Shown: positions 10,879 through 12,222, numbered from the stretch's first letter. The stretch: 64,000 bases of DNA from Guillardia theta CCMP2712 (GCF_000315625.1 NW_005434595.1:173826-237825); one strand, 5' to 3'. The notes: generated by a model not told the origin, from the letters alone. A program made the numbers and translations.

Positions 10879-12222
10879 ATGGTCGATATGAAGCAGGAAC
10901 CGGAGTTCCGGGTGACCAGTGCATGGCGCCAAGATGAACAGCAAGATGAAACGATGCACGTATCCATGAAACTCTTCTGTGCGCTTCCGCAGGAAGCGAA
11001 ATGGAGTGTGAAGATGTGTGTGAGAGGAGTGCGATCATGATGCAAGCATGGATGTCGAGACGGAGCACGTCTTAGCTGGTTGCCGGCAACGAGGATCGAC
11101 CGGGTCTAAACAACTGTGAGCTAAGGTGCCTTCTGGACTTTACGACTGCCCATGTCCCGGCCAAGTCCTACGAGCCTGCGCGAGATCTTTGAGACGCATC
11201 CTATAGCTCCTACTTCCCTGATACCCTTGAAGCTGACGCTGCCAGGGATGCATGAAGGGATGTATCACCCCTTCCCTCCTCCCGTCCCAGTACCGGAAGC
11301 GGCTGATCCGAAAGTGACTTTCGTCCACATGCGTCAGTACCATCGTATCATGAGGCGCAGAAAGTCTCAGCTCAATGGCGGCTTTCATTTCCACATCAAC
11401 ATGAAGCAGCCAAAGAAGGTTTGGAGTTGTTGGTAACCTCGGACATGAAATGATTTTTTGCTCAATGCACAGACTTCGCTTGTCCAGCATGCGAAGTCTC
11501 GCCAGAGAAGTTCAGCAGGCACGTTCCAGTCGACCGATCAAAGTGTGCAGGAGAAACAGCCAGCACGACGTCGAGTGGCGAAGAGGGCGACTAAGCAGGA
11601 TGTGTCCTGTGGTACATGCAGGTGGGAAAAGCAATCCTGGTGTCGAGGAATCTGTTGTTGTGAATCTTCTTTGTAAAGGTACTGCATGGATAGACCGAAG
11701 TTTGGAGGATCTGGGCGATTGAAGAAGAAGTGCATTCTTCTGAGGAAGAAGAACCTGGAGAAAGCGACGGTCAAGAACAATTTCTTGAGCGAAATACAGG
11801 CAAGGAGGATCAACGATAGTCTCCCTGAGCAGATACGCCAAGATCATCAGAGCGACGACTCCATGGGAAGTGGGAGCTCTGCACACAGCGCGTCTGAGGA
11901 GGAGGAAGAGGAAGAGGAAGAGGAAGAGGAGGGGGAGGAGGAGGGACAGTTTTCTTCGAAGGTGAAAGGAGGGTGCATTCTTACGGCGCAAGTAATGATG
12001 ATTGTGCAGGAAGCGAATGCTGCCGCTCTCGCCCTCTCCACTCTCAGAGAAAATCCACTTCGGAGAGAGGAGGAGGCGAGGAGCCATCCCCTGGGCTCCT
12101 TTCTTTCCCTGGCTCCTCCTCCTATCGCCCCCTCCTCGTCCTCAGCCGACGATTCATGTCCCGATCCAGTACGACTTGCTCTGCCTCCTCTGAGGACGGT
12201 GTTACCCCCTCCTGCTCTTTGA
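10879..12222 (+). CDS. NF-YA/HAP2 (CBF-B)-like transcription factor fused to a partial CXXC zinc finger
   Basis: FVHMRQYHRIMRRRKSQ resembles the NF-YA A1 helix. After intron 11419-11472, QHAKSRQRSSAGTF resembles HAMxRxRGxGGRF. After intron 11622-11678, CGTCR|YCMDRPKFGGSGRLKKKC appears. An acidic tract follows. Start uncertain (10879 or 11152). Confidence 0.75.

Follow-up and report, generated by a model that had tools for sequence, protein, structure and literature searches.

A 64,000-nucleotide stretch of the Guillardia theta CCMP2712 genome (GCF_000315625.1 NW_005434595.1:173826-237825; the window, in whose coordinates all positions are given unless stated otherwise) raises the question of whether a single plus-strand gene, with its start codon at 11152, joins part of the transcription factor subunit NF-YA to half of a CXXC zinc finger, as had been predicted from the sequence alone, and what such a protein would do. 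NF-Y has been called a factor conserved across almost all eukaryotes that owes its CCAAT specificity to NF-YA, and CXXC fingers are described as needing both of their zinc clusters. We found that the locus is a real, expressed, single-copy Guillardia theta gene, and it is nearly certain that the architecture it encodes is a conserved one. The gene belongs to a small family of putative transcription factors that had not been described, in which the NF-Y docking helix of NF-YA is followed by one zinc cluster of a CXXC finger.

The coding sequence occupies four exons on the plus strand (11152-11418, 11473-11621, 11679-11961 and 12010-12222; 267 + 149 + 283 + 213 = 912 nt) and specifies 303 amino acids, its ATG at 11152 being the first start downstream of an in-frame stop. 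Splicing was examined in transcript-type contigs of two studies (X1 and X5), in a DNA-type run (X13) and in X20, the sole run recorded as RNA raw reads. The X1 and X5 contigs are collinear with the window from 10889 or 10928, respectively, up to 11416 and then skip 54 nt and 57 nt; after a 2-nt shift of the contig joints, these skips are introns 11419-11472 and 11622-11678, with GT..AG ends. The DNA-type run, in contrast, is collinear through introns 1, 2 and 3, and it has depth also upstream, where X1 and X5 show none. Both introns are thereby confirmed as originally predicted, and a different splicing that would separate the two motifs was not seen, the X1 and X5 contigs joining them just as had been read. 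We infer a third intron (11962-12009, 48 nt), bounded by a GT at 11962 and an AG at 12008-12009: the X1 and X5 contigs have loose ends at 12008, the final 30 letters of which are those of 11930-11959; the joint of this intron is not reported directly because the Glu-codon repeat at 11889-11950 is skipped in read mapping. X20 contributed 4 reads only and is neutral on the introns. No paralogue of the first three coding exons was found in the 87.1-Mb, 669-contig assembly, and the extra genomic matches were rejected as paralogues, being only Glu-rich low-complexity matches.

In the spliced reading the motifs follow one another in the predicted order, VTFVHMRQYHRIMRRR ... HAKSRQRSSAGTF ... SCGTCR and, across intron 2, YCMDRPKFGGSGRLKKKC. 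Reading from the N-terminus, a family motif comes first; it is followed by a basic helix of the NF-YA A1 type, the GxFxFxI strip and a basic linker, after which come the one-zinc half of a CXXC finger and, last, an acidic tail. We scored the window protein exon by exon and used the full-length orthologue P0001 from Hanusia phi as a proxy for the spliced protein. The features of the protein are as follows.

11200..11283, plus strand: N-terminal family motif PIAPTS..PLKL.LPG.HEG...P.PPP, residues 17-44, with G32, G36, P40 and P42 invariant in an 11-sequence alignment.
11314..11370, plus strand: NF-YA A1-like helix VTFVHMRQYHRIMRRRKSQ, residues 55-73, from CBFB_NFYA positions 3-19, matches to the A1 of NF-YA/HapB in the PDB and a helix in the AlphaFold2 (AF2) model of the orthologue.
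11476..11526, plus strand: degenerate A2/GxGGRF remnant SLVQHAKSRQRSSAGTF, residues 91-107, from a CBFB_NFYA match that extends to position 56 through the intron and in P0001.
11608..11621, plus strand: half-CXXC, part 1, CGTC and two bases of a split Arg codon (C135, C138), from the sequence.
11679..11733, plus strand: half-CXXC, part 2, (R)YCMDRPKFGGSGRLKKKC (C141, C157), from zf-CXXC positions 26-45 of 48, PDB CXXC matches and the family alignment.
11889..11950, plus strand: acidic Glu-rich tract, from the sequence; likely an activation-type tail.

The N-terminal motif is a conserved feature that was absent from the original prediction.

Is this arrangement peculiar to Guillardia? A full HMMER pass with exon 1 over 1.84 billion representatives returned 11 proteins. 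The best of them, P0001, is a transcriptome-derived Hanusia phi protein of 372 amino acids in EukProt, and it provides the cryptophyte orthologue whose existence had been proposed as a check: its layout is the same, it scores near or above both Pfam cut-offs, it is 77% (exon 1), 58% (exon 2) and 67% (exon 3) identical to the window protein, and its motifs stand in the window's order, ending in SCGTCRYCKDRPKFGGSGRLKQKC. The other ten matches are exon-1-sized fragments on metagenome and SRA contigs. Family contigs were retrieved through exon 1 and one metagenome scan with an N-terminal profile, so that the finger was not used as bait. A finger lies downstream of the A1-like exon in seven of the nine lineages fetched, whole in six and as its start only in the seventh (L032). 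The half-fingers of these lineages read as follows.

L015: DCGMCKYCLDKVTFGGTGRLKRPC
L026: DCGLCKYCLDKVTFGGSGKLKRKC
L016, split by an intron: DCGVCR, then FCLDKVRFGGTGRLKRKC
L017 and near-identical copies, split by an intron: DCGQCR, then HCRDKVRFGGPGKLKKRC
L034: DCGTCIYCKDKRKFGGSGKLKKSC
L032: DCGACR and an intron donor, after which the contig stops

No finger was seen downstream in L025, whose contig ends ~200 nt past the exon, or in L033 and L035. An intron interrupts the finger at one and the same place and phase in four lineages (the window, L016, L017/L028 and L032), TG(C/T) AG followed by gt, and because intron position and phase are shared we argue for common descent of the whole arrangement. 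L026 has an AT-hook-like exon, RKKIGRPRKNP (856-975 of its contig), just upstream of the half-CXXC, which fits a DNA-contacting linker. Word-indexed protein searches, limited by a length filter and by exon-fragment gene calls, returned nothing with exons 3-4, P0001 itself alone with P0001, and two more fragments with the family alignment. The family signature is the N-terminal motif, A1, GxFxFxI, the basic linker, the half-CXXC and the acidic tail, and on the evidence of these sequences Hanusia and several uncultured eukaryotes from aquatic habitats have kept the layout. As a separate observation, one family lineage (L017, L028-L031 and L036), known from marine metagenome contigs, has a G+C content of 69-75%, a remarkably high value for a eukaryotic genome that uses GT..AG introns.

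How much of NF-YA is present? Against Pfam curated cut-offs of 27 bits for CBFB_NFYA (PF02045) and 26.5 bits for zf-CXXC (PF02008), the two families named in the prediction gave the only meaningful exon-by-exon matches, both weak. Exon 1 alone matched CBFB_NFYA and no other Pfam family (model positions 3-19, E 0.012, 16.6 bits), and its sole PDB match was NF-YA, 4awl_A. When the genome was scanned in six frames with PF02045, this locus ranked first (19.8 bits, positions 3-56, read through intron 1). In P0001 the CBFB_NFYA score was 26.8-27.6 bits for the whole protein and 30.4 bits for residues 40-170, covering model positions 3-56. The pattern V.FVH.RQ(Y/F).R(I/L/M)..RR is common to 17 distinct family sequences, and CBFB_NFYA and no other family was matched by 6 of 11 members. 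Furthermore, a profile of the family's N-terminal part, run against the whole PDB, found four sequences, all NF-YA or HapB; they include 6qmp and 6qms, short NF-YA chains of 21-31 residues that we take to be A1 peptides crystallised on NF-YB/NF-YC. An AF2 model of P0001:1-260 (11 rows) had a mean predicted local distance difference test score (pLDDT) of 53.5, its only confident part being a helix at 60-74 (pLDDT 75-84). Contacts of the NF-YA A1 helix with the histone-fold domain (HFD) have been listed as V238, N239, K241, Q242, R245, R249, R250 and R253 (PMC12101057). Aligned to that list, the window is identical at V238, Q242, R245, R249 and R250 and has Arg at K241, and the invariant family residues V58, Q62, R65, R69 and R70 fall on NF-YA HFD contacts.

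The seven DNA contacts in A2 and GxGGRF are R274, H277, R281, R283, G286, G287 and F289 (PMC12101057), and SLVQHAKSRQRSSAGTF, like its Hanusia counterpart, retains five of them (H277, R281, R283, G287 and F289); it has Leu at R274 and Ala at G286. It has been reported that R274G abolishes HAP2 binding (PMC12101057). The segment YLHESRH, described as replaced in the prediction, is indeed gone from SLVQHAKSRQRSSAGTF, and the spacing between A1 and A2 is 2 residues shorter than in NF-YA. The A2-like stretch looks constrained between Guillardia and Hanusia because 14 of its 17 residues are identical, compared to ~30% in the linker that follows. It was not found in L015, L016, L017 or L026, where just a short basic linker leads from A1 to the finger. 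Of the NF-YA-like core originally proposed, the A1 helix therefore stands, and the A2-like HAKSRQRSSAGTF is limited to Guillardia and Hanusia; the family-wide likeness to NF-YA is the A1 helix only, not the whole core.

The second half of the question concerns the finger. Exon 3 alone matched zf-CXXC at model positions 26-45 of 48 (E 0.015, 15.8 bits), and its ten best PDB matches are all CXXC domains (KDM2A, MLL1, MLL2, MBD1, FBXL19 and KDM2B). P0001 scored 28.7-30.8 bits, over model positions 20-44 only, and P0001:112-185 matched 22 distinct PDB sequences, all of them CXXC, the best being KDM2B (E 2.2e-6, 16 of 27 residues identical); the three best alignments start at the second cysteine cluster. 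The contiguous half-fingers of L026, L015 and L034 also lie above the zf-CXXC cut-off (31.4, 31.4 and 35.6 bits, respectively), over model positions 17-47 only. The half-CXXC pattern, CGxCxxCxD..xFGGxGxLKxxC, represents no more of a type-1 finger than its cysteines C4-C7 and its two loops, KFGG and the basic one. A canonical zf-CXXC domain has eight conserved cysteines, CxxCxxCx4-5CGxCxxC ... CxxRxC, that bind two zinc ions. In MBD1 CXXC1, zinc 1 is held by Cys176, 179, 182 and 215 (C1-C3 and C8) and zinc 2 by Cys188, 191, 194 and 210 (C4-C7) (PMC4642587). By these ligand sets, exactly the four zinc-2 cysteines are retained, as predicted; the predicted absence of every zinc-1 ligand holds in the window, which has neither Cys nor His at C1-C3 or C8, and in all 7 family sequences, and CxxRxC is absent from the half-CXXC.

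Seven distinct complete sequences are available, from Guillardia, Hanusia and five metagenome/SRA lineages, and invariant among them are the four cysteines, the Asp, FGG, the next Gly and Leu-Lys. Loss of the cysteines in orthologues, which would have spoken for decay, was thus not seen. The half-finger is a coherent module rather than the product of random decay, because Cys, D, FGG and LK are conserved in seven sequences and the intron position is shared; this agrees with what had been suggested from the window alone. Other positions of the loop vary: KFGG is found in the window, Hanusia and L034 and TFGG or RFGG in the rest, with F, G and G invariant, and the dipeptide before C7 gives LKKKC in the window, LKQKC in Hanusia only, and KR or KK in the rest. 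DNA and transcript contigs have no variant letters at the window's Lys in the Gln position. A look-up in the ESM Atlas gave no usable match.

What could a protein of this kind do? We favour, as somewhat probable, a picture in which the A1 helix would sit on NF-YB/NF-YC, the linker and half-finger on DNA, and the acidic tail would activate. In this picture, the A1 helix would dock in the acidic groove that the histone-fold dimer of NF-YB and NF-YC offers, and docking would set the basic linker and half-finger on DNA, where they would replace or supplement the CCAAT-reading A2 head, in Guillardia beside a decayed A2; the trimer would then read something other than, or beyond, CCAAT. The four cysteines would hold one zinc, and the zinc would close the loop such that the basic tip before the last Cys is presented to the major groove, as in a full CXXC.

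In favour of docking, both partner subunits are encoded in the genome. Six-frame scanning found an NF-YB-type gene on contig C9, with two introns within the fold, and an NF-YC-type gene on C59 (LPLARIKKIMK...), with a 57-nt in-frame intron within the fold; sequence reading also pointed to an NC2-alpha-like gene (C11) and an NC2-beta-like gene (C53). No canonical NF-YA was detected, the best PF02045 match in the genome being this gene, no back-translated YLHESRHxHA pattern was found with up to one mismatch, and no canonical CXXC domain appeared at E <= 1, though such negatives do not prove absence, since the assembly is a draft and was scanned in six frames exon by exon. A bolder form of the proposal, in which this protein would be the only surviving NF-YA descendant and the trimer would read DNA via a one-zinc CXXC and not CCAAT through A2, we hold to be quite unlikely. 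As an observation apart, locus L004 (C27:721780-721944, minus strand) gave a weak CBFB_NFYA match (16.9 bits, FMTGSRHEYAHRRRIGEYGK) that resembles the NF-YA A2 head more than anything else in the genome, but upstream of it no A1 was seen. The locus could represent another NF-YA-like gene, one that has diverged strongly.

Several points weigh against the docked activator. At two listed HFD contacts the window differs, with His for N239, which is invariant in the family, and Gln for R253, a position where other members carry Arg or Lys. Besides being short, the helix gives A1 matches that are weak when taken singly (E 0.0003-0.2). Within the finger, neither the Lys of KFGG nor the Gln of KQ is constant in the family. 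Ligand loss destabilises canonical CXXC domains, in which KFGG stiffens the loop and KQ or RQ before C7 contacts CpG (PMC4642587, PMC3685328); given the effect of ligand loss (PMC4642587), a one-zinc half may not fold like a canonical CXXC. AF2 gave no confident model of P0001:112-185 (6 rows; pLDDT 49.7, the half-finger at ~45-50). Lastly, the 4 reads in X20 mean that expression may be low, and the 11 upstream ATGs of the leader may limit translation.

The marginal A1 scores also nourish the main rival, that the protein is a stand-alone binder of DNA or chromatin whose A1-like helix is a nuclear localisation signal, adds a contact to DNA or binds a partner other than NF-YB/NF-YC. It would suit this reading that most members have a short linker with no A2 remnant and that one carries the AT-hook-like exon. 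Nevertheless, we regard it as unlikely: the invariant Q62, R65, R69, R70 and V58 sit on listed HFD contacts, in both the PDB and Pfam the region matches nothing but the NF-YA A1, and the genome keeps NF-YB and NF-YC with no canonical NF-YA detected to use them. A different doubt attaches to the finger, which might be a one-zinc knuckle for protein contact or stability, or even metal-free, leaving the protein a competitor or adaptor of NF-YB/NF-YC with no sequence reading of its own. The KQ Gln is missing in 6 of 7 sequences and the K of KFGG may be K, T or R; both clusters are needed in canonical domains (PMC4642587), the MLL1 CXXC makes protein contacts as well (PMC3032784), and the NF-YAr retrogenes are a precedent for an A1 kept beside a decayed DNA head. 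Yet none of C, D, FGG, G, LK and C changes, the loop stays basic throughout, even between deeply diverged members, and the basic linker and acidic tail fit a DNA-bound activator, so that we consider this reading improbable.

It is hardly credible that a disordered protein evolving at a high rate resembles the two families by chance, or that the gene model is wrong. The exon-by-exon scores of the window do fall under the Pfam cut-offs, and the AF2 models are poor; but splicing was confirmed in two studies, relatives keep both motifs in one order, half-fingers lie above the curated cut-off in four relatives, and the intron position is shared. Together with the Pfam scores of P0001, the family alignment and the PDB matches, this refutes such a reading for practical purposes.

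If the docked activator reads DNA, would it read CpG? The original prediction had speculated that the protein reads CpG-rich promoter islands in the window, and this part found no support. The observed/expected ratio of CpG is 0.71 in the window, 0.58 in the array upstream of the gene and 0.4-1.1 per kb, and no CpG islands were found in the window at a scale of 1 kb. In addition, the window has Lys in place of the CpG-contacting Gln of KQ, and in 6 of 7 family members that position is Lys or Arg; the basic loop tip is conserved but the CpG-specific contact is not. Because that Gln is replaced by Lys, selectivity for CpG or for methylation is doubtful. The genome scan gave two matches to C5-methyltransferase domains.

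The remaining features of the gene are listed here.

10852..10858, plus strand: TATA-like element TATAAAG, ~31-37 nt upstream of the first transcript-covered base, 10889.
10889..11151, plus strand: 5' leader, 263 nt or longer, containing 11 upstream ATGs, from transcript contigs.
11152..11418, plus strand: exon 1, residues 1-89, with the N-terminal family motif, the A1-like helix and the GxFxFxI strip; 77% identity to P0001.
11419..11472, plus strand: intron 1, 54 nt, GT..AG, with an in-frame TAA; joint in X1 and X5, retained in X13.
11622..11678, plus strand: intron 2, 57 nt, GT..AG, phase 2; position common to L016, L017/L028 and L032.
11962..12009, plus strand: intron 3, 48 nt, GT..AG, phase 0, with no in-frame stop; loose ends in X1 and X5, X13 collinear, reading frame open.
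12010..12222, plus strand: exon 4, with the TGA stop at 12220-12222, from the sequence and transcript contigs.

Contig starts (10889 in X1, 10928 in X5) cannot prove the start of transcription. The open reading frames (ORFs) of the 11 upstream ATGs are all of 4-28 codons, each closed before the main ATG, which suggests control of translation by upstream ORFs. All three intron lengths (54, 57 and 48 nt) are divisible by three; introns 1 and 2 hold in-frame stops, and retention of intron 3 would insert 16 residues with the frame intact. The C-terminal exon (12106-12219: ..SLAPPPIAPSSS..PVRLALPPLRTVLPPP) weakly echoes the N-terminal motif (11200-11283, PIAPTS..PLKL.LPG..PLPPP) with a pairwise E of 0.44, an echo that may be due to chance. 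One contig each of X1 and X5 runs from the last exon into a convergent minus-strand neighbour (12008-12900), which has an ORF at 12556-13191 and CT..AC joints at 12617-12663 and 12735-12805; either the 3' ends of the two genes overlap or the assemblies merged them. Elsewhere in the window, an assembly gap (a run of N) lies at 258-942, with CT-rich and CCT-repeat flanks.

As to whether such a fusion had been described, the original prediction knew of none, and none of the open papers and preprints searched joins the two Pfam family names. A search for cryptophytes and CXXC returned one paper, in which the term occurs once and whose subject, by title and abstract, is nucleomorph histones. The database row of the Hanusia protein lists both Pfam families as precomputed matches; the co-occurrence of NF-YA and CXXC therefore exists as silent automatic annotation, without description. 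The family would offer a natural protein that keeps the docking helix of one factor and one zinc cluster of another, a testable example of how exchanging the reading head can redirect a histone-fold platform, a minimal CXXC module from nature that structural studies could use, and a candidate regulator of cryptophyte promoters, a little-known field. Should the protein prove to be the sole descendant of NF-YA, and the trimer to read DNA through the one-zinc CXXC, a promoter factor of nearly all eukaryotes would have had its reading head rebuilt, and half of a CXXC finger would be proved able to fold and bind DNA alone.

How does the family compare with known systems? With NF-YA, HAP2 and HapB it shares the A1-type helix and a proline-rich run before A1, and in Guillardia and Hanusia H277, R281, R283, G287 and F289 of the DNA head; it differs in the replaced YLHESRH, the Leu at R274, the Ala at G286, the A1-A2 spacing shorter by 2, the lack of A2 in other members, and its extra N-terminal motif and zinc module. 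With type-1 ZF-CxxC domains (KDM2A/B, FBXL19, DNMT1, CFP1, MLL1/2 and MBD1 CXXC3) it has in common CGxCxxC, the spacing to (K)FGG, the basic loop and the seventh Cys, and GSGR occurs in the half-CXXC as in DNMT1 and KDM2. Unlike them, every member lacks the first CxxCxxC and the eighth Cys, KQ is KK in the window, and the domain context is NF-YA-like, not a chromatin enzyme. CCT-domain proteins (CONSTANS, HD1) may be a functional analogy: an NF-YA-related segment sits on a histone-fold dimer, and a changed head gives a specificity other than CCAAT. The CCT reader, however, is an A2-like helix, whereas the added reader proposed here would be a zinc module, and no sequence relation to CCT was detected. 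Background to this analogy is given in PMC4827209. Mammalian NF-YAr retrogenes likewise keep A1 largely intact with decayed A2/GxGGRF contacts (PMC12101057), but they are recent retrocopies with no new DNA-binding module, whereas the family described here spans several lineages and adds a half-CXXC.
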